DNA of 64,000 nucleotides from Schizochytrium sp. TIO01 (taxonomy: Eukaryota > Protista > Bigyra: Labyrinthulomycetes): positions 2,170,001 through 2,234,000 of the forward strand of contig SMSO01000032.1 in the NCBI GenBank assembly GCA_004764695.1. The letters run 5' to 3'. Position 1 is the first letter of the stretch. Each line of letters opens with the position of its first letter. Both the position numbers and the translations under genes were made by a program. Below the pieces are notes generated by a model, which did no database searches, had not been told where the DNA came from, and saw nothing but the letters and a program-made list of their open reading frames with translations. Below, piece by piece: positions 36,687-60,664 of this stretch.

Positions 36687-38119
36687 TACTTTGTTCTGTT
36701 GCTTCTGAGTCAGGAATCTTTAGTTGGCGTATGATTTACTGCCTATGCGCTAACTCTCGTTTTCCCTCTCTCCGCTTTTTGTTTTTGTCATTCTTTCTTT
36801 CTTTCTTTTTGCTTTGCTTTGCTCTTATCAACGTTTGGTCCCAACATCAAATTTACTTCAGGTTACAGCAAATATTAAAATCTACGCTTTGATTCCATTA
36901 GCTTTTAAAACAAACAAACAAACAAACAAACAATTGTTTGTGGTTTTTCCCCCCTCTTCCGCTTTACTTTTCTTCTTCTTACGATTGTTACTATCTTTAT
37001 TACCACTATTGAATGTTTTCTTCTTTCTTTGTTTAAATCATTTTTATTTATTTTTTAATAAGAAGTGCTGTTTCTTTTATAAAATATTTTTCAAATAATA
37101 TTAAAAAGAATACTTGGCATTAAATTAAAATGGAAAGAGGGCACCTTTAGCTGGTCTTAGGTTTATTGGCATATATGCGATGAAACTTTTTACTTACCCT
37201 ATTTATTTATTACTGTTTTATCAAAATAACATAAAAACGTTTTACAGTAAAGTTATTAGTTACCCACAGCAGAGGAGCGCCGCCTGGAAATATTCGCTCT
37301 TCTTGTCTTCCTGTGAACTCTGGTTTCTGAGCAAGAGAGCAACAACGACCCCTGCTGTCTGCTTGTTTATCTGTTTTGTTTGTTTTGTTTTGCTTGTTTG
37401 TTATCCCCTCTCCAGGCGAGCGAGCCTGCGTCTATCCATCTGGTGGTGGCGCTGCACATACATACATCATACACATGTGAGAGAGGGGGAGAAGAATGCG
37501 CGTTGCCAAGTAGGCGGCCCTCTCTGGCTGCGGGCCCACAGCTTCCGCAGCGGCGCCCTCCTGCGCTGCTGTTGGAGGCGTGAGCGGAGGGGGGGCTGAT
37601 GTTGGGCTACTGTTGGGAGGGAGCGACGGATGGCTAACTGTGACTTAGAATTATTTTGCTCCATACAAGGATGCTTTTAGCTTCCGCTCGCGGCATCGAA
37701 CAAGCTAGCTGCGGCAAATCTAGAAGCTGCAGCTTCGCTTACGCCCGCACCGGAGCTAGCGTCGAAGCTGCATAGCGCGCGCAAGAAGCTAGACGCCGTC
37801 GAAAGCGCCGCAGGACCCTTGCAAACCCGAAAGGGAACAAACAGCGCAGCGCCCGCCGCGAAGGCCTCCTCGCGGTCTTGGCGAGGCCGGCGGCCACCGC
37901 TCGCGAGGGCGAGAGAAGAGAGCAGAGAGAAAACCCAGCCGGCGGGCTGGCCAGGCAAGGCCGCCGGAGAGCGGCCACGGCCTGGAGCTGGAGCTCGACA
38001 GACCTAGGCAGGCTTGCTTGGCTCGAGGTGGGCGACGAGACGCCCGCCACCCCAGGCAGGAGCTTGATTGATTGAGTGACTGACTGACTGACTGCGCGAT
38101 TCCAACTCCGTCTCGCTCT

Positions 38120-41100
38120 ATGTCGCGCGCGGGGCGGCGCAGGAAAGACAGCTCCCGGGAGAGGGACGTCGACGAAGAAGGCGCGGCTGCCGAGGAGGAG
38201 GAGCTCCAGCAGCGCAGACCCAGGCGCCAGCAACAGCGCGAAGGTCAGAGACGTGCCCTCCAAGATGGCCAGGGCGCGCTGGCAAGAACGCAGGCCCCAG
38301 ACAGCCAGGGCAGCAGCAGCAGCAGCGGCAGTGGCAGCGAGAGAAAGGAGAGCAGGCACGAAGAGCAACAACGGCAAGAAGGCCAACAGCAGCAAGGAGC
38401 GCAACGGGTCCGAGAACGGCGATAAGTACGGCGATAAGTACGGCGAGAGCGGCAACAGACACACAGTGGACGACGCGGACAGCACGGGAATCAGTTGTGG
38501 GAAGCCCAGCAGTGCGAGGAGGAGGAGGAGGAGAAGGACAGAGGGAGAAGGAGAAGCGTTAGCAGCAGAAGGAGAAGAAGCTGCGCGAGGACTTCAAAAC
38601 GGACGACACGACTGTGAACGGGGAGGAGCAGGGGGAGATGGAGATGATGAGGGCGTAGATAGGAGCATTGATATGCCAGATCAAAGTCGAAGGCGAGGCA
38701 CCAGAAGGAAAGAAGTTGCCAACAATACCGCATCAGCGCAGGATCAACATCGTCAACAACACCTTGGGCACAATGTGGACCATCAACAGACGCAGATGCA
38801 AACGCAGCAAATTCATCAGCAATGCAGCAAATGCAGCAAATGCAGCAAATGCAGGTGCCAAACGGAGGCCTCGTGGAGAGAAGGCAATCACAGCAAAGGA
38901 GACGACGAAGAGGGCATCAACCTGACCTTGGACTGCGAGGAGGTGAAGATGGGGCTCCAGCGCCGAAAACTTTGCATGAGGTGGGGTACATGGCGAAGGA
39001 TGGCATTCACATGCATGAGTTCAATGAACACAGCAGCAATGGAGGGGCCTTGCAGCAGGATTCAAGTCTGGACATGTATAACGCCAATCGTAACTCCTCT
39101 TCAACACAGGCACCTATGATGATGATGTCAGGACACGCAAACATATCCTCTAACACAACCCAACCACCAGCAAGGCCAATTCAAGGACACCCAGGGTCTT
39201 TTATTGGAAATGCTTATCCTGGAAATACCTCTGCTGGCTACAGGAACCATCTTGGAGGACATCCTGGAAATACCACAACGCTCGATTCCGCACGGCGTGA
39301 ACCCGTATCGTGGAACTTTTCGAGCGCAGTACATGAAACAAACGTCCGCAATGGAGCACCACCACCGGCCATGGCAATGCCTGCCCCGCACTCTTCCTCG
39401 TCAATAAACAATGGCTCATCTTATCCGGGATACTACTATTACTACCCAATGCACTACCCGCCGTCTAACACAATGTCCACGGTGTCACCAACATCGTCAC
39501 CTCGAGCAGATCTTGAGCCTTTTATCTGGTCCATGAATACTCCCGAAAAAATCGATGATCACCATGCAGCCTCATTAGCAACAGCCGTGCCAAGAGATGA
39601 AATGGGGTATTTCGACCCCGTACATCTTGACAACCACGATATAGACATGACCTCCACCCAAGGCCACCTGGCAAGAACTCAGCCTCAAAACTTACATGTT
39701 CCACATCAAAACTATCTGCAGCAGTCACAGCAGCAGCAGCAGCAGCAGCGACAACAACAACAACGGCAACAGCATCATGCCGAGGAGTCTGGGGCTGTCC
39801 TTTCTAAGATGCCCAGGGAGAAGAGAAAAACCTCCAATGATAGTGTAGGCAGTGGGGCGAGCAATAGCAGAGCTAGCAGTGGCAGTGGCGAAAATCTCAG
39901 CAATGCTGGTCATAACAACAACAGCGGAAGCGATAATAGCGGAAGCAGCAGAGGAAGCAGGAAGGGCAGAGGCAAGGGCAAAAGTCGCGGCAGAGGCAAA
40001 AGAAAGGGTAGTAACACCAGCAATCCTAAGCATGACAACAATGACAACAACAAATTTGGAGGTGCGAGGGACCAAATCCAGGGTAGAAAGAATTCGAAGA
40101 CTCGAAGTAAAGGAAAGCATGCCGCAGAAAATAGTACGGCAAATCAACCACGCCCACAGCTTCGCCAACGACGAGGTAATACCCCCCCAGCTATAAGCTC
40201 AGCTCCAAACATGCATTACTATGCCAACTCCCCAATGATGGCGACAATCGATCATGATGATGCCATGATCATTCAAGACGCAGCTCCTGATGCTTCAACT
40301 GCGCATACAGCTACCTCATCGAGAACTAGCAGCAGTGAAGCTCGTTCTGTGGTATCGGGAACAAACGTGTCTACAGACGAAGCCATCTCCCACATGCATA
40401 CCTCTGCAAGCTTTACCACCGACCCAAACAATAATCTTCATCATCACCAGCAGTATCATCATCACCATGTGCAACATGATCAGATTCCAGGCTTGTCTCC
40501 TCCACCACTGCCTAACTCTGAGTTCGTACCTCCCCTCGTCGCTCAACAACACCAGCATCATCAACAACCACCCTCCCACGTGCCAGAACATATGGTCATC
40601 CCCGCAGAGCGACCTGCACGCAAACGCACCAGGCGAACACCAAAACGGTGGGATCTCCAAGCTGTTTCAGCCTTGATGGTCTTTGTACGAAATAATCTTT
40701 CCAATAGCAATCGGCATACCCGGAACTGGGCTGGGTGCGCTGAGCGCTGGAATCGCCGGAGACCCGACCTCACGCTTAGTAATGACGACCTCAAAATGAA
40801 AATCAAACAGCTCGTTCGCGAGCGACCCAACCGATCCCAACACAAAAATTGGGACCGCATTAGCAAGGCAGCCTCGGAAACGGAAGGTATTGGAGTTCCT
40901 CTCAAATATTGCTCCTATACCAAATAACCTACCGTTGGTGCATATGGCGCGTTACATGTTCTACCGTCGTTTTAACAATACGCAGCTACCTCCACCTCTT
41001 CCTGCGCCAATGATGCCACCTGGATTAGCGAATGCTGATTCATCATCGCAATATGCCTCGGGGGGAGCCATTGACTTTCATGTAGCACCTTCGCAGGCTA

Positions 41101-41981
41101 CAGTTGGTACGCAACGCAATAGCAAAGGGTCACGAGGTCGTCGAGAACCTCGAGGATACCTGGCCCTGCTTGCCTGGGCACAACCGTATCGCAACATTGT
41201 TGTCCAGTGGCTGCGGTTAAACCATCTTGAACAAGGTCGTAGTGTGTATGAGCTACAGACGGCCCTCAACCAAATCTTCACCCCTTACGATGTAAGTCTG
41301 GTACTACGGGGAGGCTGTCCATGCTCCTCGTGCCGGAAATGGGGACTTCAGTGGAACCCTTTGACCCCCTCCGCCGAAGCGGATGGACAACTTCAATTAA
41401 ATCACACCCGTGAACACCTCAATATCCTTCACGAAGTTCTATCCTCTTACGATGCTGACAAACACCAGCACCGTCTCGAGAGATGGCATGCCACTGCTGT
41501 GGGGCGAGTGGATGCTATTTCCCAGTGGTCATTAGATGAGTTCTCTGACTTTGTCGAGCCGCTCCTTGTTAGTATGGATAACTTTGCAACGTTCTCTTCG
41601 CAGCTCAGGAACTATTATTCCCAAACTGCCACAACGACCTCGCACATGTCGGTCGCTCAAATCCTCAGTAGCGTTGAGCAGAATACTGCTTGCAAGCAGA
41701 ACAAAGATGATCCTTTCTTAGCAAAGTCCCAAGGATCTGCCGGCAAGCAACAAGAACTCCAACAGCATAATAGCCACCACATACAACAACAATACGCCCC
41801 GTACCATGTCGGGTCTGGAAACATAGATGATGATTTCCCTGACGACAATAATGTGAGTAGAAGCTTCTTGTTTGACACACAAGATACGCCGATGCTCATT
41901 CCGGATGCAGGTTCATCTTCATCATCGTCCAAGACATCATCTTCGGCACCGACTCCACCATCAGTTCCACCAAGTGTATGA
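38120..41981 (+). CDS. Paralog 1 of unnamed CxCxxCxxW-family putative nuclear regulator (Gln/His/Ser-rich, ~1,280 aa if joined); frameshifts near 38820 and 40885, and possibly near 38350
   Basis: Overlapping ORFs 38120, 38253, 38822 and 40890 join into QQIHQ/QMQQMQQMQ and ...KAASET/KVLEFLSN. It has a basic NLS-like segment (RPARKRTRRTPKR) and a C-terminal module homologous to the ORFs at 46597 and 51577. The 5' start is uncertain. Confidence 0.65.
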
Positions 41982-44900
41982 CCAAGTGTGTGAGTAGCAA
42001 TGGTATGTCCGGTTAGAAACACAATATATCGAGGAATACAATACTCGCAAGCACGTTCTCAGACACGTTTACGATAGCAGCATACCAAAATCAAAAATTA
42101 CTGCAAACATATTGTCAGCAAACCAAGATTTCCCCTTTTTCAGCTGTGATCAGAATTTACGAAGTCTTTTCGAGAAGTGGAGAATTCTCTACATCACTCT
42201 GCTGAAGTGGTCATGTTTTGATTGTTACCAAGATCGCTCTTCTGTACAAGAAATCTTATTGGAGGTGTCAAAGCCATCTTTAGATCGCCCAAGAATTCCA
42301 AACGATGTTTTCGAATTATCAGGTATGCAAAACATTGATGGAAATAATCGCAATGCTATCAATGCTTTTGTCCTGGAAAATGCAAATGAAAATTTGTCCA
42401 GTGTAATGCTTGATGCCACGTGCCGCAAATGACTTTATTTTCAACTTGACCTTTCTCTTCCTTACTACCTTCCCTTCTTCTTTTTCTCTTCTGCCTTTTC
42501 CCTTCTCTGTCACCTGATGGTGCAGCTATCGCCCTTCCTATGTCTCATCCAATCGATCTCAAGACAGAGTGCAGCTTACATTCTATCCAAGCATTAAGCT
42601 CTATAAAGGTTGGATCGTGTAGAACCTAGATAAAGTGGTGCTGGTGTTGGTCAAATGGATATTAGCTTGATTCTTGCTGAATTCCACAAAGCTATGGTTC
42701 AAAAGGTTGTAATTCTTAACATATATTAATGTACAAAGTGTACGTACACTAAACAAATCCTCGTCTTCAAGTTGGTGCATCATGTAACAACTACGATTTG
42801 AAATGTTACGTCTGCAAGTTTTGGTGCCCTATTGCTGAGATCTCCAATCGAAGGAACTAGTGGATAAGACATTGCTAGAGTTCTTGGTGTCCCTTTGTAA
42901 AACCCCATTGACATAAGGTTTACATTAGAGCAAGAATAGGCAGCCAGGCTGCCCGAGCCAAGAACTAAAAGTGTGAAGAAACATTAACTACACCCAAGCG
43001 TGGTTTAGCTTGAATCGATGATTGGAGAAGGTAAATAAACCTAACCCCATCGATTATCTCTAACCACATTCAAGAATGTCTTATTCTCCCTAACTACTAC
43101 ATGAATCCACCTGTCCTGGAATTCATTCCCCAGGACAGCAGTTCGCTAACACTTAAATCAACCTTCTTATAACCTTCATCAAGCTTCTTGCCCTCATCTT
43201 TACAGTCAACCTCACGCTAATCAGTATCACCTTTCAGAACCTGTTAAAGTTCAATGCTCCCGTTTCTCGTCAGACAAATGATTTATGGAGGTATATAGCA
43301 GATCCACTTTAGAAGTATGCATGTAAGGTTAGCCGGAATTCTTAAGAATCGCAGAGATGACCCACTACTTTACCCATGTTAAACGCTCCATCTATCTTCC
43401 AACAAAATAATGAAATTAGCTCGGATGGATAGATTTTGTTGAGTAAATTTGCGTTATTTATTGAATTTTTCGCTTCAAAGAATGACAGACATACGGAATA
43501 AACCTAAAAAGGCATTTCCTAAATAACTACAGCACATCTCCTACGACCGGGTATCGAGCACGAGCTCTTCATATGCTTTGGAAGATTGGAGCTTCATGAA
43601 TCGGCGATGGATTTTATAGACCAGATTCGCTGATCATTACTATCTAAATATAGTAGCAGAAGCCAAGGAGCTTAAATATGCTTTTCTTTTTACCCGACAT
43701 TGTGGTGATTAGACTTCAGAGGTAGTATGGCTAGCGAATTGGACGCCAGGACGCATTGGAATCCAATCCATAGCAGCATTTCTTTTCATGCATACCATCG
43801 TGATGTCCGAGACCGGGATTTAATCCTCCACTACCATGAAGGATACAAACTCTCAATTAAAATTTCTGCTAATATTACTGCCTTGCGCATGTGCCAGCAC
43901 TCATCTTCCATGATGTTGATGGATGTGATTCTGACGTCGGAGGACTATTGTCTTCACTTTGCCAGCCGTCACTTGCTAAGCAAGCTTCACCGTGCGACTC
44001 ACCATGCCCTTGTCAGTTGATGATTAATAATCTCTTACCAAAAGAACTGCGCATCAAACGATGGCTCGCACCTACAGAAAGTAGCATTTTTATTTATTTT
44101 CGTGATAGAATTATCTTCCACTTTTCCCTTCCATTTTTCTTTTCAAACTTAGGAGTGATGAATCATCCAGCAAACAACTTATAGGTAGTAGTACATAATA
44201 CCTACCTACCACCAACTCTTTAGAATAATTTTGTTTTGAGCTTTGTGCACGTGCCCAAGTTGAGGTTCACAAAGCTTACATTAAAAATTCACCGATCTTC
44301 GAAAGTCACGTGGTGCAAACTGTGCTGTGCTCATCGACCCTTCTCTAGGAACTGCGTACCGAAACTGGATCCTGCAACGCAAGTACTTATTTGTGGCGGC
44401 ATGAGCTGTTTGTGTGAACTTCAAGTTCAAGTCTATACCGTAACCTTGGTGTCCAAAATGGTGAAAATTTTCAACAAAGATTGCAAGATGGCTATGACAT
44501 TGCATCAGCCACAGTGTGCGAAATCCGCAGAGTGTAGCAGATGATTGCAACTTAAAACTTCGCTATCGGAAGTTTCGAGTTGTATTCTTCAGGACCTCGG
44601 CTGGCTGGTCATCTATCATGGGCATGGTGACGACGCAGTCATTGTTTTCAGGAACTTCACTAGCACTATTAAATCAAGCCCTAACCTCAACTCTGCCCAG
44701 TACTTTTTGAGCCACCGTGATCCTTCGAATTTGTCTTGAAGTCCCGGAATCCAGGAACTATTCTGAACCTGCAGAACCACTGCGGCACGATCTTCAACGT
44801 GAAGTTATTCTTGCGAGATCCGACTAGAATGTCAAGCTGGATTTCGACTTGGATGATTACTAGTACATTTCCGAAGTCAATCTCTGCAAGAAGTCTACCT

Positions 44901-46596
44901 CAGAGTAGTTCGGGTTCACTCATCAGAACTTAAAGCCTTTTGAGTGAGTATTGGTCCAACTATGATCCTTCAGCATTTCAAAGCAACTCGAATGGGCAAA
45001 TTCTTTTATGAATGCCTCGAGCTGGTGAGGGGCGTAGTTGCAAAACGAGCGGCATTCTACACTAAAACCATCTAAATTATGCACGAACAAAGCTAAGTGC
45101 TTGAACACCGCTACAGATACCAGGAGACCTCATCTTGCGATGAATTTTTATTCACGTATTACCCAAACAGAGTACAGCAGCATGGTTATTGACTTGATGC
45201 TTGAGCAGAAAAGAATCGAAACTATCAGAAGCCCGGATTCTTCTCTCGCGTAAATGAACATAAATTGGAAAACGAAGATGAAAATACTCTTTGAGAGGGT
45301 TAACAATTTATTCAAAGAGGGATGAATCAACATCAGAACTTCCCCACGGACTGATGCTCTAAAAGAAAGACTCCAAAGAACTGAGCATACTTTGAAGCAT
45401 AGCCGTCACTGCCATGATGACCATCATTGATGCTTGTGCTACACTTCGCTCTTCGAAACCTTGGCCAAAACTGCGCTCCAGCTGACTTCAGCTAATTCTC
45501 AGTGTCTTCATATGTTCCACTGGCAGCAGGCATAGGTACTAGTGCTAGGTAGATAGATCGCATTCATCGCTAAGGGAAGAATGTCTTCAAGCCACTAGCC
45601 AAAAGCAATCACCATCTTCTCCATGGATATCCAAGCAAAACAAATGGCCAATTTGCCAGCTCCAAAACAATCCTTTCAATGAAACGAGTGTCGTAAAACC
45701 CAAAGACTCTCAAACGCGCGTGCAATTGCAATACTTGCACCCATCTTTCTGGGATCACTCCCTGGCGCATCACTCATCAAACAACGCGTATTAATGATAC
45801 TTTCACTTTATGACAATCCGAGTCTGGTGCTAGAAGCTCACCTCCAAAAGTTGGTGTCCCGCGGCATGGTTCCGCAACGATACAAAACTCTAATTCTACC
45901 CCCCCCAATCCTAGCACCTGCTGAGGATTTAATATAAAAACGTTAATGTAGATGAGGGAAAGGGGTAGAAGAGAACTTCATAGAGGAACCCATTTACCTT
46001 GAGAAAAAGCCCAGACCGGGGGGTTGATATGATTTTCTGTTATCAGGCGTGGGAGGTACGCAATTTTTATAAGGAACGCAAAGGAGCGAATGAAAAGCTT
46101 TTAGCTTTCCCTTCACAAGGGAGCAGCAGACCTGGAACAAATTTGGACGAAGGACTTCGCTCGTGGCGGCAGTATCTCTCGGGCTGACGCGGGGAAAAGG
46201 AACGTTCGTTTGTGATTTAGCTGGGTTTCCAGAACGCGGAGACAACGGTGCTGCAAAGTGGATCATCGCAGAGAGAAACATCTCGTCGGACCAAAAGGCT
46301 GGCTATATTGTATTTGACAAGCTTTTCGACTTCTTGCGAAGTAAAGGAGGAGGATAGCGACGCAAGACAAACGAATTGCACTAAGCAACTCTTTGGAAGT
46401 GAACCTATTATATTGTAGTCGAGCATCAAGCCTCTCGTTTGTTTTATTAGATTTGACGACTGCTACTGTCGTTGACAGAATAATTCGTCACTTCATCGGT
46501 TGCTTGATAGCGAGAAATTGATTGTCTCCAGCCAAAGTGCACCAAAGCTTGCAAAGAAACAAACTAGCAGTTTCTAAGAAATTTAAAGAAGGCAAC

Positions 46597-48600
46597 ATGG
46601 AACAAGACAGTAGTAATGAATTTCTTTCTGATCCACATATTCATGGATTGGAGGAAGCGTTTGCAGCAGAGACGGGGGCTGCTATTGACTACCTAAAAGC
46701 CGAAGATGATTTTCCCTCAAGCAACTTTAGGCAGGAACGAGGAGATTATACTGATCATGTATCCCCAGAAATACAGGTAAATATTGAAACGGCAGAACCA
46801 ATTGCCACAACTGAGATCCAACATATTCCAACACCAAATCAACAGCAGCTAAACGCACCATCCAACAATACAGTAGAAGACTACTCATCAGTAGTAAACC
46901 AGCACATCTTGAATCAGTATGAGGAAGGACAGCATGGGAGCAGCATTACTTATTGCCCAGTTAATGCCGGTGTGGCGTCTTTTGAGGATGAATCCTGTGA
47001 GAGTTCTCACAGTAGAGACAATACAGTTGAAATGCCAAATTCGCAAATTTCGACGGGTGAGTTGATTGATGCTGATCTCAATGATATCGAGCTTGACCCT
47101 TTTTTTACCAATGTTCATGTAAACAACGACGAGGGCGTTAGAGATGCAGCATGGGCCCAAAATCATGGTGCTCGCCTTGACAGCGGCTTGCGGAACCATA
47201 GTCTCAGCAGTGACCTTATCTCTGATACTATTATTCTCCCTTTTGACCTCTCCTTTAATATTGACCCTTCAGACTTGTCGGTTAATATCGATATTGAAGA
47301 GATCAGTGAGTGCCATGGTCAGACTAAATACGTTGATGATGCTCCTTCCCGAAAACGTCGAGCTTCTCCGCATGCATCTGTAACTGACGATATTAGTGAT
47401 GTGGAAACAGCCCCTGCCGTATCACCCCCGACAAGTCCAAACCCGAGTGTTTCTGATACTAAACCAAAGACGCCAACAGGCAACAAGAAATCCCGCAAAC
47501 CTATCGATTCCCAGCTCAACCTCGACCAAACAATTTCCCTATACGATGGTATTCAAAAGAGCATTGCTACTACACAAAGACAAGAACGTAACTTTGCCTC
47601 CCTCTTTAGGATTTTCAAAGAGCGTTATGGTTGGTTTGGTGATAAGTTCTCTGACCCCAGTCTCTTTAAACAAAAGGTTAAACTTTACTGTAATGAGCGC
47701 CGCAAGCGCGACCAATTGCAGTTCTGGAAGAAAATCAGCTCTTGCAAGGGTGATGAAAACAAGGTACTAGCTATCATTGATCGCGAATTCAAGGGCAAGT
47801 CTAATGGGCACATCTCGCCCAATTATGATTTTTCCCCACTTGCCAAATATCTGGCGACTCGCACACGTATTGGTGAGCGCTCCCCAGGTATTATTAATAC
47901 CTGGGATGCTAGTGCACGTAGTTGCATTGTCGAGCCGATGTTGGACATTCACCGTCGCGAAGGCTATGGTGCTTTTGCCCTGGCCCACGAACCTTTCTCC
48001 AGTCTTGTGACTCTTGGCGAAGTCGAGGTCACGATCCTTACGCACTGTGACTGTCCCTTATGCCAGGAGTGGAATATTCCTTCTGGTCTAGATATTGCTG
48101 AAACAACAACGGCATGGACGCGAGCTCGCATTGGTATTATGCGCGATGTACTAAAAGCGCATAGTGCGATGGGCCGCTATGGAGATGTGGCAGACTTTGC
48201 TGAGCAATGTCAAAGAATACCTGCACTTAAATACTGGAGCATTGACCGTTTACAAAACTTTCTGGAAAGCATTCACAGCACCACCTCCTGTGACTTATGC
48301 TCATCCATGCGTTGTCGCAAAATTAGACGCCGCCATGCCGTTGAGGATAAGGAGGAAGAGAAAGATTATTATGATACAGATTCGCTCAGCAACGAGGATA
48401 CATTTGAGAGCCATGATATTGGCCTTCTTTCGCTTGATCAGCTCGATGCCCTAGATAAGGAGGAGTCTGATGTTCCCCAATATCTGAGATATGAGGATGA
48501 AATTAGTCTGTCATGTCTTTATAAGATTCCCACTCTGGCGATGGCGATGATGTCGTTGAATGCTTCGCCCTTTGTCTTATCCTGTGATTATTTATCATGA
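46597..48600 (+). CDS. Paralog 2 of unnamed CxCxxCxxW-family putative nuclear regulator (acidic N-terminus)
   Basis: Long intact ORF with first ATG at 46597. Acidic N-terminal half, PSRKRR and KKSRK basic motifs, and the shared module RQERNF...FKQKVKLYCNER...WDASARSCIVEPMLDIH...CDCPLCQEWNI...WTR, plus CDLCSSMRC. Confidence 0.8.
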   Translation: MEQDSSNEFLSDPHIHGLEEAFAAETGAAIDYLKAEDDFPSSNFRQERGDYTDHVSPEIQVNIETAEPIATTEIQHIPTPNQQQLNAPSNNTVEDYSSVVNQHILNQYEEGQHGSSITYCPVNAGVASFEDESCESSHSRDNTVEMPNSQISTGELIDADLNDIELDPFFTNVHVNNDEGVRDAAWAQNHGARLDSGLRNHSLSSDLISDTIILPFDLSFNIDPSDLSVNIDIEEISECHGQTKYVDDAPSRKRRASPHASVTDDISDVETAPAVSPPTSPNPSVSDTKPKTPTGNKKSRKPIDSQLNLDQTISLYDGIQKSIATTQRQERNFASLFRIFKERYGWFGDKFSDPSLFKQKVKLYCNERRKRDQLQFWKKISSCKGDENKVLAIIDREFKGKSNGHISPNYDFSPLAKYLATRTRIGERSPGIINTWDASARSCIVEPMLDIHRREGYGAFALAHEPFSSLVTLGEVEVTILTHCDCPLCQEWNIPSGLDIAETTTAWTRARIGIMRDVLKAHSAMGRYGDVADFAEQCQRIPALKYWSIDRLQNFLESIHSTTSCDLCSSMRCRKIRRRHAVEDKEEEKDYYDTDSLSNEDTFESHDIGLLSLDQLDALDKEESDVPQYLRYEDEISLSCLYKIPTLAMAMMSLNASPFVLSCDYLS

Positions 48601-49862
48601 CTGATACATCCAACCTGAAATCTATATTTTAGCAACCTTCTTGGCTCAAACGACGTAGGTATATGTCTCTCGTTTGTTTGCAAGCTGATCCTAGACCGCA
48701 GATTTAGGATAGCTCATAACAAATCACTCAAGTATTCTATTTTTTCCCACCCATAAAGTTGATATTTGTTTGTGCCTGAATTTCGCATTGCTAACTCTAT
48801 ACAGTAGACAAATTTTGTTTGAAGTTTCACTACATAATACCTTATCACCGCAGCCAAAACAACGAAAAGGAGGAATGATGGCATTCTCAACCTCGTACTT
48901 TTCTTTCGTTGCATCCACACAAAGCAGCATTCAACATGACTTTCAAGTGTGCCCAGTGATTGTAGCATAGGTTCGATTCTGCGGTATTTGATTAAATTCA
49001 CAAGCAGACTACAGTTATGACTCACCTTCAGCTCAACTAGTTACGGAATCCAATAGTTTTAGCTTGGAAAAAAGCACTTCAGAGGATTTGTTGAAATAGG
49101 AACAAACTCGAATGTCTTTTAAGCAAGAGATGGGCACACTGTTAGGAAATCTGGAGTGTGCCCATCTCTTGCTTGAAAGGTGAAACAGCAGTTTTGCAGC
49201 TAACAGAAATTTCTTGGTTATTTTCGCGCTAAAGCTGTCAGGCCGTCGTTCTGCTAGGATATAGTAGGTATCACTCAACCGCCCCATGTCGTACAAGCCC
49301 CTCTTTTTTTTTTCTTTTTTTAAGAAGCGTCACGAGTACGCATGGGAGACTCTGCCTTCAACAAAGCAGCCAAGCCAAGCCAAGCCCACTCCACTTGAAA
49401 CTCGGGATCACATTTCCACTCTCCATCCTTATTCCTGCGTTTGCTGAACGGACTTCATTCAAGCTATGCCATCCGTGAAATTTCTTTAAATTTATGTTCT
49501 CCCTAGCCCTTTTTCTCTCTTTCACAGCTAGGCGCTCCTGTAGCCTTCAACTAGCGAGAGTAACAATTCTATCCATCTCACTTTCGCTCGTTTCGCCGGA
49601 GAACCATTTCCAAAAATATTTGCTAACTTGCCCTGTACACACGCTCCAAATCTGCAAAATCTGCAAAAACTGGAAGTTCTAATCATTTCTTTAAAATTTA
49701 ATTTGTTTTTACTTTTATTTTCATCTCTAAAATCACTCACAGATTGGAGCGATCTTAATTCCACCAGTAGAGAGTCATGGTTGCTCGTTATTCCAGTTCG
49801 TTATTATTATATTTGCTCTGTTTATCTTTTTAAAATCTTTCAAGTTTACTTTTTATTGCCTT

Positions 49863-49919
49863 TCTTCTTCTTCTTCTTCTTCTTCTTCTTCTTCTTCTTC
49901 TTCTTCTTCTTCTTCTTCT
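49863..49919. repeat. (TTC)n microsatellite
   Basis: Visible directly. Confidence 0.95.
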
Positions 49920-50718
49920 AAAAGTTCCAGTTGCCTTGCTTGATTCAATAAAATAATAATAATAGTCTAAGCACGTGAGGAAGTTCAGAGCTCACACCAA
50001 AATGTAGATCAGTTGATCATCCAATCGTTGATCAATTTGAACGGTGAACTGACTGCTCTTGTGACTCTCGCACATCGCTTGTGCTGTGCCCGACTGCTGG
50101 AAGTTGAATGAGAAAGGTCGATTGCCCTGGAGATGGGTTCTACAAAGCGGTAAAACGTGTTTGCCCGAAAAAAGGAGCCATAGATCACACTCTTCCTTTT
50201 CATCAAGTTTGGAAACTTAGAAAAGTGTTCTTTTCTTGTTTCTCTGCGGACGAGGAACAAATCACTCTCCTCTCCTTTCAGAGATCAAGCGCACGCAGCG
50301 ATTAGCCACTATGACAGCGCCTGCTTCGATGACCCGGTTTAGACAGCATTCAGATGTTGATGATAACCTGAAAGGACTATGACATCTGCATTATCAATCA
50401 ATGCTAGGAGATGTTTTTAATCATGGCTGAGTGTACTCCCTACTACTCACTTGCACGTGCCTAGAAAATAGGCTAAACCATAGCGGTTCCTGATAACAGT
50501 CTAGATAAGTAAAAATGTCGGGGCTAAGCACCTCTATTTTCTGTACTTTTCTTCTTATCATTTTCTGTGCAAGCTTAACCCGTTTGGCTGATCCTCACGC
50601 CGTGCAGCTTCGCCAAAGCTGGAAGCAAACAGTAGAAGCCTTCTCTTTGTCAACGATTAGCAAACTCTTGATGTGCCAATTGACAATCCAGCTGCAAATG
50701 AGAATTTGTGCTCTCGAA

Positions 50719-50720
<2 letters not shown>

Positions 50721-50772
<52 letters not shown>

Positions 50773-50799
50773 CATCATCATCATCATCATCATCATCAT
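50721..50799. repeat. Compound (AAT)n(CAT)n microsatellite
   Basis: Visible directly. Confidence 0.95.
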
Positions 50800-51576
50800 A
50801 AAAGCATGAGTTTACCTATCCTTCAAATTTTATTCGCTTGAACAAGTTGAAGATTTACCTTAAGTTCACATCGGATATACTATCAGGGCAGCACTTGCCC
50901 TCTCGCGGCAAGCAATTTATTGTAGAAAACGAATTGTGCGTTTTGCCCGTGTTTCTCTTTTCTTCCTAGGCTCGGCACTAGCGAGCCAGTTAAGTTAAGT
51001 CGAATTTTATTTTTAGTGCGCTCAACTTTAATTTTTCATCAATACTTCATCGTGGCTTTCATTTCTTTTTTGAAATAGCCTCTTTCTAGGTTTTAAGAAT
51101 TATCTCTCTCCGACCCAGGCCCTTCTCAAAAGAGAAGAGAAAAACACAATACAAATAAGAGGGATACTTTCACTTATGTTCTATGTAAACATTTAGACTA
51201 TCGTTGGAAACTAGAAGATTTATTCTATTATGATAGGTACCTAGGTAGCATTCAAATGTATAGGAGTATGTTTCAGGTAAATCGTAAATTGTTTATATAG
51301 ACACAACATTATTAATTTAAAATAAAATAAAAATATTAATCTCTCAGCATGATAAGTCACACTCCCTGGTCAGAGTTACTGAGCAAACCTCTAATATCAA
51401 GCACAACCGGCCGAAGGTGCAAGCATTCGCACGACAAGTGTACGTGTAGCCCTTCCAGCTTGCCTTCGTAGGTCTTTGCGTGATTGAGAGGACAACCAAA
51501 GGAGAATTAAAGTTCTGAAAAGTCTTGAAATACGCAGTCCCTGAAACCTTGTTCACTCTGCACAGGACTCACTAAG

Positions 51577-53406
51577 ATGACAACCCTTGAAGGCCAAACT
51601 ATTGAGGTTTACCAACAAGCTGATCCTCCGGGGGCCACAGTGGCAATCCCTGAGTCAACTCCTACAACTCTATGCTATGGTCCTTCTGCCTTCACTACTG
51701 ACTCGACAATGTTCTTTTATCATCCTCGGAAACAACCTCTTCCCAATCCTGAGAATGTAGACACCACCAACTTAACTTCCCACTACAATACCGCCGATTC
51801 ACCTGTGGATAAACCCGACCCTGAAGAAGACGATATCGTTAAGCCACCTGTGCTTAATTTTGACCGTGAAGGCAACACCAATTTAGATTTTCACGACGGT
51901 ATGGGTGAACTACCTGTGGATAACCTCGTCCGTGAAGGCATCAACCCCAACTTACCTTTCCCCGAGCTTTTCAATGAGCCACCTGTGCTTAATTTTGACC
52001 GTGAAGGCAACACGAATTTAGATTTTCACGACGGTATGGGTGAACTACCTGTGGATAACCTCGACCGTGAAGGCATCAACCCCAACTTACCTTTCCCCGA
52101 GCTTTTCAATGAGCCACCTGTGCTTAGTTTTGACCGTGAAGGCAACACCAATTTAGATTTTCACGACGGTATGGGTGAACTACTTGTGGATAACCTCGTC
52201 CATGAAGGCATCAACCCCAACTTACCTTTCCTCGAGCTTTCCAATGAGCCACCTGTGAATAAATTCGACCTTTCCCAAATGTATGATGTGATTTTGAACA
52301 TGCTCAATGCAAAGTCCCACCAAAAACGCAACTTCAAAGCTATATTCGATAGCAACCGGTTCCTCCAGGATAAATTTAAAAAATCAAGTGTTTTCCGCCA
52401 AAGCATTAAAATTTTAACAGGTGAGCGTCCAAGCAAGATCAAGATCGGATATTTCACAGAACTGAAAAGCATCATCACTTCTGGAAACGCAGTTACTATC
52501 TCAAACTTCGTCTACAGTGCATTTCCCATAGGTTTTCCTAACGAAAGGGTTGACTTAACCCCAGTTGTCGACTTTCTAGTCAACGACCTCCAAACGACGC
52601 AAAACCAAAGAAAGTGTTCTGCAAAACATGTTCTTGATTGGACTCCTGAAGCGCAGCGGTGCATTCGTGATATATTGCTCGATATTCACTTAGCTAATAA
52701 CTGCTCTTATCTGGTGCCATATAAGGCAGTGGAAAAGCTGCTTCCACTCTCACAGGTGCAGATCCTAATTATGACCAACTGCTCATGTACACTGTGCAAG
52801 AAGTGGGGAATCGAGCTCCAAAGCAATACTGAAGAAACGATTCTACAGTGGACTCGTGGTGTGATTTCTCTTTGCAAACAGATGTTGTGGCATCATTTGC
52901 ACGGCATTCCACTTGACAATATAAATGAGGTAACAACTCTTCCCAGCGCGGAGGATGATCGAAAGCGTTTTGAGAAGATGTCAAGGCGCCATTGCACATG
53001 CTCTCGCTGCGAGCGTAATAAAAGATCAAGACAAGATGAAGTTGGGCGAAATGTTCAGCGTAGACTCGGAAACCGATCTGGTGATGACACTTACGAAGAC
53101 AATGCAGAAAGTGAACAGGAATATGATGACGAGGACGAGGATGATGACAATGAATATCCTTATTCAATTACAGATTTCCACATAGATGATGACTGGGAAA
53201 GTACAGATGAGCAATCGTTATTGAATGACTCTGAATCTGAATATGACCAAAAGGACGAGGAGGAGGAGGATAGAACTGATGATGATGCAAGTGATGGTGG
53301 CAAAGTGTTTCGAATTGACCATACTGTCGAAACCAAGCGGCCAGCTACCTTCGTGGATTTCGGAATCCTCTCCGATGGAATCATTTTGTATGAGGAGTAT
53401 GTTTAA
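51577..53406 (+). CDS. Paralog 3 of unnamed CxCxxCxxW-family putative nuclear regulator (internal 45-aa repeats, acidic tail)
   Basis: Intact 609-aa ORF with the shared module HQKRNF...FRQSIKILTGER...WTPEAQRCIRDILLDIH...CSCTLCKKWGI...WTR, plus CTCSRC and a D/E-rich C-terminus. Confidence 0.8.
   Translation: MTTLEGQTIEVYQQADPPGATVAIPESTPTTLCYGPSAFTTDSTMFFYHPRKQPLPNPENVDTTNLTSHYNTADSPVDKPDPEEDDIVKPPVLNFDREGNTNLDFHDGMGELPVDNLVREGINPNLPFPELFNEPPVLNFDREGNTNLDFHDGMGELPVDNLDREGINPNLPFPELFNEPPVLSFDREGNTNLDFHDGMGELLVDNLVHEGINPNLPFLELSNEPPVNKFDLSQMYDVILNMLNAKSHQKRNFKAIFDSNRFLQDKFKKSSVFRQSIKILTGERPSKIKIGYFTELKSIITSGNAVTISNFVYSAFPIGFPNERVDLTPVVDFLVNDLQTTQNQRKCSAKHVLDWTPEAQRCIRDILLDIHLANNCSYLVPYKAVEKLLPLSQVQILIMTNCSCTLCKKWGIELQSNTEETILQWTRGVISLCKQMLWHHLHGIPLDNINEVTTLPSAEDDRKRFEKMSRRHCTCSRCERNKRSRQDEVGRNVQRRLGNRSGDDTYEDNAESEQEYDDEDEDDDNEYPYSITDFHIDDDWESTDEQSLLNDSESEYDQKDEEEEDRTDDDASDGGKVFRIDHTVETKRPATFVDFGILSDGIILYEEYV
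51844..52257 (+). repeat. Coding minisatellite: three near-identical 135-bp (45-aa) units plus a partial fourth
   Basis: CCACCTGTG recurs at 51844, 51979, 52114 and 52249 (135-bp spacing). The unit encodes PPVLNFDREGNTNLDFHDGMGELPVDNLxREGINPNLPFPELFNE. Confidence 0.97.
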
Positions 53407-55256: not shown

Positions 55257-56111
55257 ATGGACGTAGGAGATCATGGCGAGGTGTACAGCGGCATAAATAT
55301 ACGCGTGAGCATCCATAAGGGCGCTTTGATGCCTCGTGAAGAGTACTTTTCCATGCTGGACGCTCTGTGTGATGTGCACGAAACGCGCACTGCTGTGCAG
55401 TTTACCAATCCAGTAGGCCTTGGACGTGTGGCAACAACGGGATTTGTTATTGGGGCACTGACTATGGCACATCTGATCTGGCTGGGGTTCAACTTTTCAA
55501 GCAGCACTGCCGGCTCCACCCTCGTCAAGGCATGGTGCGTATATTTTATCGCACTTTGTTTCTATCATTTGTCAGAATTTGCAACCACTGCACGCTATAA
55601 TGCTCCACTTGTCACATGGGAAAGCTTTTTGCTCGACCAGAGTCGTGCTTATCAGATTGCTATGTTGGCATCATGGTTGGAGTTTTGGATCGAAGCTGCC
55701 ATCATGCCTGGCTTTAAGACCGGTATGGTTGCCAAGTTTGTCATGGTGCTGGGTCTTGCCTTAGTTTTTATCGGGCAAGGTTTTCGGACAGGCGCTATGG
55801 TAGAGGCCGGAAGCAACTTCTCGCACCTGATCCAGGTTAAAAAAACAAAATCGCATCAGCTCGTTACCTCGGGTCTCTACAAATATGTGCGCCACCCATC
55901 TTATTTTGGTTGGTTTTGGTGGTCCATTGGTACCCAACTTCTCATGTTCAACCCAATCTGCCTGGTAGGATATGCCATTGCCGCATGGAAATTCTTTGAA
56001 AGCAGAATCCCTTATGAAGAGCGCAAACTTGTTGAATTCTTTCCCCAAGAATACCCAGCATATCGCAAACGCACACCAATCGGTATCCCATTTATTCCAT
56101 CACATGCGTAA
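55257..56111 (+). CDS. ICMT: Protein-S-isoprenylcysteine O-methyltransferase (ICMT/STE14)
   Basis: Multi-TM protein with YHLSEFATTA, SFLL, EFWIE, GQGFRTGAM...NFSHLI, HQLVTSGLYKYVRHPSYFGWFWWSIGTQ, NPI, RIPYEERKLVEFF and IGIPFI. Confidence 0.95.
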   Translation: MDVGDHGEVYSGINIRVSIHKGALMPREEYFSMLDALCDVHETRTAVQFTNPVGLGRVATTGFVIGALTMAHLIWLGFNFSSSTAGSTLVKAWCVYFIALCFYHLSEFATTARYNAPLVTWESFLLDQSRAYQIAMLASWLEFWIEAAIMPGFKTGMVAKFVMVLGLALVFIGQGFRTGAMVEAGSNFSHLIQVKKTKSHQLVTSGLYKYVRHPSYFGWFWWSIGTQLLMFNPICLVGYAIAAWKFFESRIPYEERKLVEFFPQEYPAYRKRTPIGIPFIPSHA

Positions 56112-56956: not shown

Positions 56957-59900
56957 TTATTTGTCATGGGGCCACCGGCTTTGTGCCCAAGCAGAACGAG
57001 ACGAAGACTTTGCAGAGTTAGACCCGCCCTTCCACCGGTTCTCTGCCCAAGCGTTGCGTGCTGAAGCGTTGCTTGAGGAAGAAGAAGATAATGATGGGGG
57101 TTGTTGAGACGGAGACCAAGCTCTTTGATCAGTCTTGCCTGAACCTGCGCTAGGATAAAGGAATGCAGGGAGATCATCTGTGTTGCCACCAGGTGCACTT
57201 CGAGCTGGGAGGAAGCGGTTTGCAAAATCACGAATACTTGATCGCTGGCTTGATTTGGATGAAGCCGCATTGGTTGACTCCGCTTCTGCATTTACAGTAG
57301 GAAATGTGGGAGGCAAAGGTGGCACAGGCGGAGCATGATACTTTGGAGGTACCGGTGGTGGTTGCTTTTGGCGCTGCGACTCGACATCAGTCTCAGTAGG
57401 GTCTGCTGAAGGAGCTTTACGAAACCAGGACAATCGACTAGCAAGCCCAGATGGTTTCCCAAACATAGGAGGAGGAGATGGTGGAACAGTGGAGCTGCTA
57501 CTTTCAAAATCATGTTCCGAGGCGTCATTGTATGATCGAGGCATCTTGAAAGATACATCAGCCGTAGCTCTAGATTCCTCGTGCGCATGGTGGTCGAAAT
57601 GAAAACTAGGGGCTCCGTGAGTGTTAGGCAAGCGAGATGGTTTAGGACTCGCAGGCTCTGAGGAACCAAAATGAAAACTAGGTGCTCCATGTAGAATTTG
57701 AGCTCGGCTGCGACTGTTCGATGCATCATTATCATCAGGGAAATTGAAGCTAGGCTGATGCGGAAGGTTACCTGCGCGTGAGGAAGAAGAAGCTGCAAAA
57801 GGGCCAGGAGCTCCCACCGCAGAGTGACCAAGAGAGTATCCATCGCCACCCTTGTTACCGCCAAAAAACCGAGCGGTTGACTGTCTAAAAAACGATGGTT
57901 TCGGCTCGTTATAGTCACTCTTATCAGAAAGGTCAACCGTGTGCGGACCAGTTGTAAGAGCTTCGCGACGGTTGCTACGTTGAGACTTACGGCGGTAAGC
58001 AAAGATAGCTGCACCAAGCACTATCACACCTACACCAGCACCAACTGCACCATAAATGGCAGTCGAGGCGGCACCTGAATCTTCATCGTCCGAAGTAGTA
58101 GATGATGTACCACTTTCACCGGAGCCAGCATTATCTGTGGTGGTGCCACTTCCGCTGCTCGAACCACTTCCGCTGCTCGAACCACTTCCGCTGCTCGAAC
58201 CACTTCCGCTGCTCGAACCACTTCCGCTGCTTGAACCACTTCCGCTGCTTGAACCACTTCCGGAGGTAGTCCCACTACCGGTATTATTTGCGCTGGTAGT
58301 TGTGCTGTTAAAAACACTTTGCGAGACAATTTCGGTGGTTGTAGACTTTGCGTTTAGTTGACCATTGGGAGCCAGATCAAAAAAATAGAAGCCCAAATCC
58401 CCATCCATAATCGGGCTATTTACAGAGCGGATCATATAATGCACGTTGAGAGCTGTATTGTTCTTCATGAGGGGAAGAGTTAGAGTAGCCGAGCCGGTAT
58501 TATCTACCTCGCCAACTAGCCACCAGTCAAGATCAACAGTGTCATCGGCATAGTCGTAGGTGGAGGATGATGAGTACAATTCATCAATAGCCACTAAAAT
58601 CTGCACTTTGGAAGACAAAGAATCGGTGCCAGCTACATCCCACTCGAAGGTAAAATCTTCAAGAGGTTCAAGAGAGCTATTCAAAAGAGCATCGGTGTTT
58701 GTAAAGGCAAGTGGACCGACTGAAGAGCTGAATTGAATGCCAACATCTGCATAACCAAAATCTCCAATCAAGTCTTTGGAAAAATTTGTTTGCAGTTTGG
58801 TAGCTTGAAAGGAGCGGCGAGCGGTGAATCGCATGGTCATAGTCATATCTGTTTTGGGCAGATGCTCAGACAGACTAGTTACCGAGTTGGCAAGGTTATA
58901 AAGATTCGGGAAAAATCGTGATTGAGAATCGATGGGCTCGTAAGGACGAAAGTCTCCGAGAGTTGTGTTTGAGTACGTTTGGGCGCTAGTATCTACTCGA
59001 TCCCAAGCATAGTAAGAGCTTGCTGCTGCATCATTTTCCAGTTTTCCACGCAACTGAAATGCATTACCTACCGGGACAACCCATGTATCGTTAAGGACAG
59101 AAACGACAGGGCGGATCTCATCAGTGGTAATGATCTCACCGCAGCTAGAATCTGAAGCCGTTCGCGATTCAACGAATTTACGCATTGCCTGTAAATTGAT
59201 TGGGTTGAAATAAGGGTCAGAGTAAGACTGCAAATTGCGTCCTGAACAGAGGTTGGCGTATCCCATGATGGTAGACCCAGAGCCAGGCTCTACAGCGCCG
59301 GCCAGCATTAGGCTGCTACCGCAATCACGAAAGCTATGTGCACCATAGACTTGGTGGCCCATCTCGTGAGAAACATAATCAACTGAAAAAGAGTCACCAA
59401 CTGGACGACTGATACCCGTTGTACCTCGTGCCTTGCTAGAGGAGTAGCACAGAGAAGGGTACTGGGCTACACCACCAGCTCCAGTTGAAAAACTGTGGCC
59501 AATATCGAATTCAGATGTTGAGATATTTCTCGAGGCAATAAAATCCATATTGTAGTTGAGAAGAGTCGAGTCGTTAGGCAGATCGTAATCACAAGACCCA
59601 GAAATGCATATGAGTTCATCAACTCGATCAATCAGGCGAAAGTAGATGCCAAGCTCACGCGAATAAATACCGTTGACTCGAGACATGATAGTTACAAAAC
59701 TACTAAGCACAGAGGTCACAGTACTGCCATAGTAAGCAGAATATTGTTTGTTAGCGATAAGAGCCATGCGAAAGATATAGCCCTGAGAGGTAACAGTGTC
59801 AGAGAGCTGGCGACGGCTGTCAGTGTTGTTCCGAGATGTGCTATTTTCATTATTATTTTCAAGCACTGCCATGTTTAGCTCTTCTTCACTTGCATGGGTA

Positions 59901-60664
59901 TGATTATCCTCTACAGGATCACCATGAGTGCCACATGAGAACGCAGTTTCCTCCTCCGATGTTGAATTCGAATTAAGATCAGTAGAACGCTCGGCGGTGG
60001 ATGTTGCATTGGAGGATGCGCTAATGCGTGCATCCTTAACATTGTACATGATATACAGATCGCTTCCCTCTGAAGTAGAGTCAACGTAATACATCTGGCC
60101 ACTCTTGGTGGTAATAGTAGCCGTAAGGCTGTCCACTTTGTCTGTCTCAAGGTTGATGTGAATATTTGACCCATCATCGCAGCCTCCATTCCAAGCGCGA
60201 ATCGTCGGATACTTAATACGTAACGCCTCAGGAAGAACAAAGGACTGCTCCATGGCACATGTCGTTGCATTGCCAGATGGAGTTTCGATGGTAATACTCC
60301 ATGTTCCATTATGTGCAGGGTCTTGCTCAGAAAGCGCGAGAACAGTTGTTGTGTTCAAAGCAACAAATGACTTTCTAAGGATGTTACTCACGCGATCCTG
60401 CAAGAATCGGTTTGTCCATTGTGCGGAAAGTGCACGTCTTTCATGGCCTTCATGGTGAGCCCAAAGAGATCCATAAGCGGGAAAGCTGTCCTCTTCTTCG
60501 ATCGCGTGTGCTACCGAGATGGTTTCTAGGATGACAAATGCGAGCAAGACAATCGTTACAAGGGTCCTCCCAGCGCCGAAAACCATCGTCACGCCTTGCC
60601 TTGGCTTCCTTTGCGTTTTGGGGTCGAGATTGAGGTCCCCATCAGGACATCGCATCGTCCTCAT
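56957..60664 (-). CDS. Membrane-anchored zinc metalloprotease, reprolysin-like (M12B; bacterial Reprolysin_4/5 type)
   Basis: N-terminal hydrophobic signal, prodomain with FSCGT (Cys switch), RVNGIYSRELGI, FDIGHSF, YVSHEMGHQVYGAH, AVEPGSGSTIMGYA (Met-turn), GS linker, TM helix AIYGAVGAGVGVIVLGAAIFAY-RRK and a Pro/Ser-rich tail. Confidence 0.9.
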   Translation of the reverse strand: MRTMRCPDGDLNLDPKTQRKPRQGVTMVFGAGRTLVTIVLLAFVILETISVAHAIEEEDSFPAYGSLWAHHEGHERRALSAQWTNRFLQDRVSNILRKSFVALNTTTVLALSEQDPAHNGTWSITIETPSGNATTCAMEQSFVLPEALRIKYPTIRAWNGGCDDGSNIHINLETDKVDSLTATITTKSGQMYYVDSTSEGSDLYIMYNVKDARISASSNATSTAERSTDLNSNSTSEEETAFSCGTHGDPVEDNHTHASEEELNMAVLENNNENSTSRNNTDSRRQLSDTVTSQGYIFRMALIANKQYSAYYGSTVTSVLSSFVTIMSRVNGIYSRELGIYFRLIDRVDELICISGSCDYDLPNDSTLLNYNMDFIASRNISTSEFDIGHSFSTGAGGVAQYPSLCYSSSKARGTTGISRPVGDSFSVDYVSHEMGHQVYGAHSFRDCGSSLMLAGAVEPGSGSTIMGYANLCSGRNLQSYSDPYFNPINLQAMRKFVESRTASDSSCGEIITTDEIRPVVSVLNDTWVVPVGNAFQLRGKLENDAAASSYYAWDRVDTSAQTYSNTTLGDFRPYEPIDSQSRFFPNLYNLANSVTSLSEHLPKTDMTMTMRFTARRSFQATKLQTNFSKDLIGDFGYADVGIQFSSSVGPLAFTNTDALLNSSLEPLEDFTFEWDVAGTDSLSSKVQILVAIDELYSSSSTYDYADDTVDLDWWLVGEVDNTGSATLTLPLMKNNTALNVHYMIRSVNSPIMDGDLGFYFFDLAPNGQLNAKSTTTEIVSQSVFNSTTTSANNTGSGTTSGSGSSSGSGSSSGSGSSSGSGSSSGSGSSSGSGSSSGSGTTTDNAGSGESGTSSTTSDDEDSGAASTAIYGAVGAGVGVIVLGAAIFAYRRKSQRSNRREALTTGPHTVDLSDKSDYNEPKPSFFRQSTARFFGGNKGGDGYSLGHSAVGAPGPFAASSSSRAGNLPHQPSFNFPDDNDASNSRSRAQILHGAPSFHFGSSEPASPKPSRLPNTHGAPSFHFDHHAHEESRATADVSFKMPRSYNDASEHDFESSSSTVPPSPPPMFGKPSGLASRLSWFRKAPSADPTETDVESQRQKQPPPVPPKYHAPPVPPLPPTFPTVNAEAESTNAASSKSSQRSSIRDFANRFLPARSAPGGNTDDLPAFLYPSAGSGKTDQRAWSPSQQPPSLSSSSSSNASARNAWAENRWKGGSNSAKSSSRSAWAQSRWPHDK
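58146..58262 (-). repeat. Coding 18-bp tandem repeat (~6.5 copies) encoding (SGSGSS)n stalk linker
   Basis: CCACTTCCGCTGCT(C/T)GAA is repeated on the + strand from 58146. Confidence 0.95.

Follow-up and report, generated by a model that had tools for sequence, protein, structure and literature searches.

In c-Myb, R2 and R3 are tandem homologous three-helix units of about 52 residues with conserved Trp, and the trihelix/MADF domains (Myb_DNA-bind_4; Arabidopsis GT-1, Drosophila Zeste) consist of a three-helix unit of about 60 residues whose last helix is basic. Other small helical domains are built around zinc. The N-terminal HHCC domain of retroviral integrases is a small helical bundle, similar to a helix-turn-helix, which carries one zinc on two His and two Cys, and the TAZ domains of CBP/p300 are all-helical, with their helices tied by zinc sites of the ligand set H-C-C-C. 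A protein module that recalls each of these systems is encoded in a window of 64,000 nucleotides from the labyrinthulomycete Schizochytrium sp. TIO01, which covers positions 2170001-2234000 of contig C31. The assembly comprises 64 Mb in 37 contigs, and the genome searches cover the whole of it. Three consecutive genes of the window, P1 (38120-41981), P2 (46597-48600) and P3 (51577-53406), share this module of about 260 residues; all three genes, together with their features given below, lie on the + strand.

The proteins of this type have a long low-complexity region, acidic or rich in Gln, Ser and Asn, followed by one compact, basic, all-helical module, which is made of an N-terminal three-helix unit (N unit), a linker of variable length and two three-helix repeats, A and B. 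The N unit resembles the trihelix/MADF domains in its size and in its basic last helix. It differs in being packed in a 260-residue module (predicted template modelling score, pTM, 0.88) together with two putatively zinc-stapled repeats, which those domains lack. Repeats A and B are, like R2 and R3 of c-Myb, tandem homologous three-helix units with conserved Trp; however, each has a predicted four-ligand metal site, and their length is 65-75 residues. Site A has the pattern H...CxCxxC (H-x30-C-x-C-x2-C) and site B the pattern H...HxxxxCxxC (H-x35-H-x4-C-x2-C). The ligand set of site B is that of the integrase HHCC domain, a likeness which is analogous in principle only: the spacing in integrases is H-x3-7-H-x23-32-C-x2-C, and neither a Pfam or fold match nor an integrase core was found in the family. 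Site A has the ligand set of TAZ domains, but these contain three sites spaced H-x3-C-x12-C-x4-C, whereas the family has one H-x30-C-x-C-x2-C site and one H-H-C-C site.

Homology of the three genes and extent of the family

The relationship between the three genes is visible at the protein level. P2 matches P3 with a BLASTP E-value of 4e-23 (26% identity over 228 amino acids, aa), the C-terminal part of P1 matches P2 at 2e-8 (21% over 147 aa), and the same part of P1 against P3 gives 0.033 when taken alone. P1, whose frame is interrupted in the window, was searched in separate frame pieces, and the public protein P0018 was used as its continuous stand-in. A profile of the family matches the P1 locus at 2.4e-46 and 2.0e-5 (two frame pieces), and the best E-values of this profile reach 1e-99. 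Because of the P2-P3 and P1-P2 matches and of the profile matches on P1, the similarity is far above chance, and P1, P2 and P3 can be regarded as homologous. At the DNA level, the three modules have only chance 9-15-mers in common (blastn, best E 0.24). The preliminary description of this DNA had proposed three consecutive + strand genes which share a series of ordered blocks without similarity of their DNA, and had made this proposal depend on significant pairwise or profile alignments. It is upheld on all these points, and every block quoted in it was found in its place.

A similarity produced by chance or by composition, or reading frames that are not real genes, would agree with the E-value of 0.033 for P1 against P3, with the lack of a P3 counterpart in protein collections and with the interruption of the P1 reading frame here. 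This explanation is already refuted by the P2-P3 comparison, the fold model, the family search and the profile matches. The extreme profile E-values, 40 conserved relatives, a confident predicted fold, transcript-derived proteins for several members and the 609-codon open frame of P3 with all its ligands speak against it as well, and its probability is negligible.

The eight family loci, which are mutually 20-35% identical, comprise P1-P3, three more loci on C31, one on contig C13 and one on contig C36. The profile search of public proteins that the preliminary description had called for was made with a profile of the eight modules against 1.84 billion representative proteins and returned 41 matches at E <=0.001, all but one of which reach 1e-10 or better (about 40 sequence clusters). 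One of these, the fish protein P0038, was rejected as a family member, as it gave a spurious repeat match in which every stretch scored 3.0 bits (E 0.23). The named matches are all called "hypothetical" and come from MMETSP0958, Hondaea fermentalgiana (at least nine proteins), Thraustochytrium sp. LLF1b and Mucochytrium quahogii. They are all thraustochytrid save one partial sequence labelled Durusdinium trenchii, a dinoflagellate. This partial member, P0033 (CAK9063477.1), is encoded on a 1.4-kb contig and probably represents thraustochytrid contamination of the Durusdinium trenchii culture, a real gene being the alternative. The search started from the most divergent match, P0041, in a collection of 5.8 billion proteins gave just two unnamed relatives. 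An alignment search of that collection, which was swamped by low-complexity words, returned the query alone. Moreover, no paper naming these proteins or the family was found in the literature searches, and neither Pfam nor the PDB sequences provided a name, in agreement with the earlier view that the combination was not recognisable as a named Pfam family. The genes belong to a real, undescribed, lineage-restricted protein family, which is so far found in thraustochytrids only, apart from the dinoflagellate-labelled fragment.

Transcript-derived proteins are known for P2 and for the paralogs L002 and L003. The P2 protein has 667 aa when counted from the ATG used by the public transcript-derived proteins; its stop-to-stop frame begins at 46522. 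It is 98.8-99.6% identical to P0049, P0051 and P0002, among them proteins of the JGI and Logan assemblies and of the transcriptome MMETSP0958, which we take to be from Aurantiochytrium limacinum. Four near-identical public versions of P2 show up to 8 differences, only 1 of which falls inside the module. P3 (609 aa) is a fast-evolving member of the P2 clade, the frame of which stays open over 609 codons and keeps all ligands. No counterpart of P3 was found in the public protein collections searched, including a search of the 5.8-billion-protein collection with the P3 module; its DNA is present in 9 studies, with 20 public runs in all. Immediately 5' of the P3 module, a young tandem repeat of 135 bp (51842-52257, 3.1 copies, 96% matches) codes for acidic repeats of 45 aa.

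The helical module and its putative metal sites

The P2 module (266 aa, 47515-48312) was predicted by AlphaFold2 from an eight-sequence alignment as a single all-helical unit, with a predicted local distance difference test score (pLDDT) of 92.1 and a pTM of 0.88. Its N-terminal sub-domain occupies 47515-47748. In P1, the alignment places the N-terminal three-helix sub-domain (RHTRNW ... LKMKIKQLVRERPNR) at 40649-40879, with the Lys/Arg cluster RPARKRTRRTPKR immediately 5' of it and with the conserved residues R634, W636, K658, K662, E667, R668, R671 and W677; the linker and repeats A and B follow at 40926-41582. The P3 module extends over 52264-53022. The flanks of all three modules are long and acidic or rich in Gln, Ser and Asn, and these flanks, like the basic clusters that precede the modules of P1 and P2, agree with what the preliminary description had reported.

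The conservation of the ligands was counted in an hmmalign alignment of the 41 members. In site A, H139 is found in 41/41 sequences and C170, C172 and C175 in 40/41 each. In site B, H209 is found in 33/38, H245 in 31/32 and both C250 and C253 in 32/32. The residue between the first two Cys of site A varies (D, E, T, S, N, K, P, A, G or R), CDC being the commonest form. In the window, site A consists of His at 41223 and Cys at 41316, 41322 and 41331 in P1 (followed by Trp at 41340), of H477 (47950), C509 (48046), C511 (48052) and C514 (48061) in P2, and of H371 (52687), C402 (52780), C404 (52786) and C407 (52795) in P3. Site B of P2 is formed by H547 (48160), H585 (48274), C590 (48289) and C593 (48298). 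In P3, H440 (52894) is followed by a shifted RRHCTCSRC with C475 (52999) and C478 (53008). Repeat B of P1 is without site B, with Tyr at 41448 in place of His and no HxxxxCxxC.

The ligands of each site are lost as a set, independently in different clades. Column 209 is Tyr and the HxxxxCxxC is missing in the complete P1-clade proteins P0018 and P0027 and also in P0034; P0037 keeps site B but has S, S and Y where the three Cys of site A would stand. P0039 (Ile at column 209) and the fragment P0040 (Asn at column 209) have no aligned site B triad either; these two are weaker evidence for the loss of site B, because their matches end before those columns. In view of the eight conserved ligands, two metal sites per module (H-C-C-C and H-H-C-C) are probable, with zinc as the likely metal. 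Four Cys/His per site, kept and lost as a set, are also the mark of structural zinc domains in general. Site A behaves as one metal site, since its His is conserved along with the CxCxxC and P0037 has lost all three Cys at once. Therefore, the zinc site of one invariant His and three Cys proposed in the preliminary description is retained as site A, but it was only one of the two sites.

The position of the ligands in the P2 model is alike in both repeats. Each site's His lies two residues before the end of a long helix, which is the first helix of the repeat, and each ligand triad stands directly after the third helix. When repeat A (columns 112-180) was compared with repeat B (columns 185-257) using hhalign, a match with E 7.8e-5 and a score of 23.1 over 55 columns was obtained, and the best of 60 column-shuffled controls scored 14.7. 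In this alignment, the Trp, the His and the CxxC of one repeat each fall on their counterparts in the other; a single Trp is conserved per repeat, namely W123 in A and W232, which lies inside B. The match lies above all shuffles, and therefore the C-terminal half of the module is an internally duplicated three-helix unit with what would be a four-ligand staple. Between the N unit and either repeat, no similarity was detected by hhalign.

Comparison with known domains and possible function

In the Pfam searches with the three genes, the five paralogs and the 41 members, nothing exceeded the threshold and no other domain was found in any member. Neither the module profile nor the N unit profile matched any PDB sequence; the ESM Atlas gave no usable match, and Foldseek with the P2 module model found no PDB or viral match. 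A confident full-length match to a known family, which would have spoken against a new family, was thus not encountered in Pfam or among PDB sequences, and the structural modelling suggested in the preliminary description returned a confident helical module. A match of the P2 tail to Autophagy_act_C (E 0.0044) was under the cut-off and was disregarded. The SWIM zinc finger (C-x-C-xn-C-x-H) was rejected because the His of the family stands about 30 residues before the CxCxxC and no Pfam match was obtained.

Apart from Myb_DNA-bind_4 (PF13837), which matches 2/41 members at E up to 1, no Pfam family matches more than a single member. The best PF13837 match, 17.6 bits with E 0.0052 against a cut-off of 27, covers residues 47-104 of P0029, exactly on the N unit. 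Searched over the whole genome, PF13837 matched four other loci and none of the eight family loci. Repeat A of P0032 is matched by Myb_DNA-binding (PF00249) at 15.8 bits (E 0.015; cut-off 24.4 bits), and R2 of c-Myb superposes on repeat A over 51 residues with a root-mean-square deviation of 2.2 A. Repeats A and B have in common with Myb the tandem arrangement of homologous helix-turn-helix repeats; the regularly spaced Trp triad of the canonical Myb repeat is absent and PF00249 does not reach its cut-off. These Myb-like signals are individually weak but mutually consistent. The module perhaps works like a Myb-type helix-turn-helix array, without being filed as a member of the Myb family. The Myb/SANT-like character that the preliminary description saw in the first part of the module is thus weakly favoured by the position of the PF13837 match, but this match stays well under the cut-off and concerns 2/41 members.

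The properties of the module fit the binding of nucleic acid. Its median isoelectric point (pI) is 8.9 and its median net charge +7. The most conserved residues other than the ligands are Lys and Arg on one helix (R25, K48, K52, R58, R61), and it is the last helix of the N unit that bears the most conserved basic residues (FKQKxKxLxxERRxR). A Lys/Arg cluster is present within 80 aa upstream of the module in 15/38 members, including P1 and P2. Because of the basic module, the conserved Lys/Arg helix, these clusters, the absence of any other domain and the acidic or Gln/Ser/Asn-rich flanks, the proteins may be read as nuclear nucleic-acid binders. According to this mechanism, they would enter the nucleus, where the module would bind nucleic acid, most probably double-stranded DNA, via its Myb-like helix-turn-helix units. 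A tetrahedral metal site, most likely zinc, would staple each of repeats A and B, and the low-complexity regions would recruit transcription or chromatin machinery. A Myb-like, DNA-binding, regulatory family is the best explanation of the data, and we give it about an even chance; location, metal, binding and role are what we infer in it.

Several observations weigh against this explanation. The upstream Lys/Arg clusters are missing in over half of the members, and no significant match to any DNA-binding family was found in the databases searched. The RNA support for P1 and P3 is insecure, as every run found consists of contigs whose type was guessed. The site geometry is itself a prediction, taken from sequence and secondary structure only. 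Moreover, the partner of a SANT-type three-helix unit can be a histone tail or a protein rather than DNA, and a 3Cys-1His set could also hold an iron-sulphur (Fe-S) cluster.

The last two points lead to two other explanations. The module may be a platform for proteins or chromatin, either a SANT-like histone-tail reader or a TAZ-like zinc scaffold, and the proteins nuclear adaptors or co-regulators. The all-helical architecture with its putative zinc staples, the H-C-C-C set of site A, which is the ligand set of TAZ domains, and the long low-complexity regions, which suit scaffolds, are compatible with such a platform. However, no zf-TAZ or SANT Pfam match was found in the 41 members, the ligand spacing is unlike that of TAZ, and the basic character of the module with its conserved, surface-type Lys/Arg helix fits nucleic acid better; a platform is therefore rather unlikely. 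An identity with TAZ itself was rejected, since zf-TAZ is not matched and no TAZ chain was present among the structural neighbours. It is also conceivable that the family binds RNA, or that site A holds an Fe-S cluster or a redox-active metal and the proteins are sensors. The basic module agrees with this, and so does CDC as the commonest form of the site A CxC, given that some Fe-S proteins use 3Cys-1His and that the yeast iron sensors Aft1/Aft2 use a CDC motif. The residue between the two Cys varies, however, site B, homologous to site A, has the classical H-H-C-C ligands of zinc, and neither an Fe-S nor an RNA-binding family showed similarity in Pfam or among PDB sequences, which makes this explanation improbable.

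Gene order, reading frames and neighbourhood

The relationships within the family were determined in a maximum-likelihood tree of 38 modules. P1 groups with its ortholog GBG30512.1 of Hondaea (bootstrap 100), within the clade without site B, and P2 with its ortholog GBG30511.1 (bootstrap 99). The P2 pair has P3, on a long branch, as its sister (bootstrap 90), and GBG30508.1 of Hondaea falls into the same larger clade (bootstrap 63). The three Hondaea genes are located on one 208-kb contig (locus tags 067322, 067312 and 067282). Judged by the order of accessions and locus tags only, the P1 and P2 orthologs are adjacent there and GBG30508.1 is three genes away. The adjacency of P1 and P2 is therefore older than the split of the two genera, between which the P1 N unit is 76% identical. 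As placed by the tree, P1 is a deep paralog and not a recent copy. The tandem of three diverged paralogs described earlier thus stands as a set of homologous neighbours, but with P1 in a distant clade of the family, it did not arise by a simple recent triplication. A 99.9-kb contig of Hondaea fermentalgiana carries two further family members, GBG33236.1 and GBG33237.1, whose locus tags (094602, 094612) are consecutive; therefore, tandem pairs of the family recur. No additional copies were found adjoining the members on C36 and C13.

The spacers between the three genes (4.5 kb and 3 kb) contain no convincing open reading frame (ORF) and no transposase. Beyond P3, an ICMT-type methyltransferase (55257-56111) and a reprolysin-like peptidase (56957-60664) are encoded. 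In the P1-P2 spacer, 42833-42905 is a short, high-copy dispersed repeat at which the contigs of 4/4 runs break; its summed contig depth in run X4 is about 2050, against about 7 alongside. The P2-P3 spacer contains the perfect microsatellites (TTC)19 at 49862-49919 and (TAA)17 at 50721-50772.

These surroundings bear on a possible mobile-element origin of the family, in which the proteins would be PIF/Harbinger Myb-like accessory proteins or KDZ/Crypton-associated Cys-rich DNA-binding proteins and the tandem would result from insertions. Transposon-encoded proteins commonly pair a Myb/SANT-like unit with Cys-rich motifs, one member matches DDE_Tnp_1 at E 0.043, and the high-copy repeat lies between P1 and P2. 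The DDE_Tnp_1 match, however, is far under threshold and confined to this single member, the copies share no DNA similarity, and the flanking genes are ordinary. Because the family amounts to eight diverged loci and its orthologs occupy the same neighbourhood in another genus, a mobile-element origin is little supported, and we consider it very improbable.

P1 does not form one open frame in the window. When P0018 (1280 aa, an ORF on a 4.9-kb Logan contig) was aligned by tblastn, breaks were located near 38305, near 38822 and at 40884-40887. P0018 maps to 38120 to about 38305 in one frame and from about 38304 to 38822 in the next, continues at 38825-40885 in the first frame again and ends at 40860-41978 in the next frame. 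The contigs of four public runs were compared over 37500-43000. One base at 40884/40886 is absent in 4/4 of these runs, and at 38817, 2/4 are without 8 or 26 bases (both 2 mod 3); the break near 38305 falls in a repeat that was skipped in this comparison. As the public runs are without those bases, the last break is private to this assembly and the middle one probably so. Introns were rejected as an explanation of these two breaks, which are either assembly errors or the mark of a strain-specific pseudogene. P1 corresponds to the continuous P0018, but its frame is broken three times in the window. The three indels, unshared by the other datasets checked, suggest small indel errors in this assembly, and the overlapping + strand ORF chains at 7850-13522 and 18724-21424 may be genes broken likewise or by introns. 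Elsewhere in the window, the ORF at 14148-15311 was assigned to no Pfam family at E up to 0.001.

Two of the paralogs deserve a separate description. In L006 (C31:4296113-4299601), the open frame covers at least 1233 aa, and the module is followed by a C-terminal extension of about 500 residues. Much of this extension is predicted to be ordered and has no Pfam match, and it may be a second unnamed domain fused to the module. In the paralog on C36 (L007/L016, 181727-183023), the N unit and the remainder of the module are in different frames, and the match includes one TAA. A public protein, P0008 (582 aa), seems continuous and shares the motifs of this paralog, in which the change of frame may come from an intron or from another assembly indel.

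In the most far-reaching reading, the module would be a new eukaryotic class of sequence-specific DNA-binding domain, composed of a Myb/SANT-like unit and two duplicated zinc-stapled units, the family would be the main lineage-specific transcription factor family of thraustochytrids, and the conserved neighbours P1, with one zinc site, and P2, with two, would share targets. Taken as a whole, this is a tentative proposal, less probable than the main explanation. Lineage-specific unnamed domains are common in protists. The description of the family can be considered solid, and as a discovery it is moderate, the function being what we infer. Thraustochytrids are industrial producers of docosahexaenoic acid (DHA) and carotenoids as well as important marine decomposers, and to our knowledge almost nothing is known of their gene regulation. 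Therefore, a lineage-restricted, multi-copy family of likely nuclear nucleic-acid binders may offer handles for engineering and for the study of lineage-specific regulation in these organisms.

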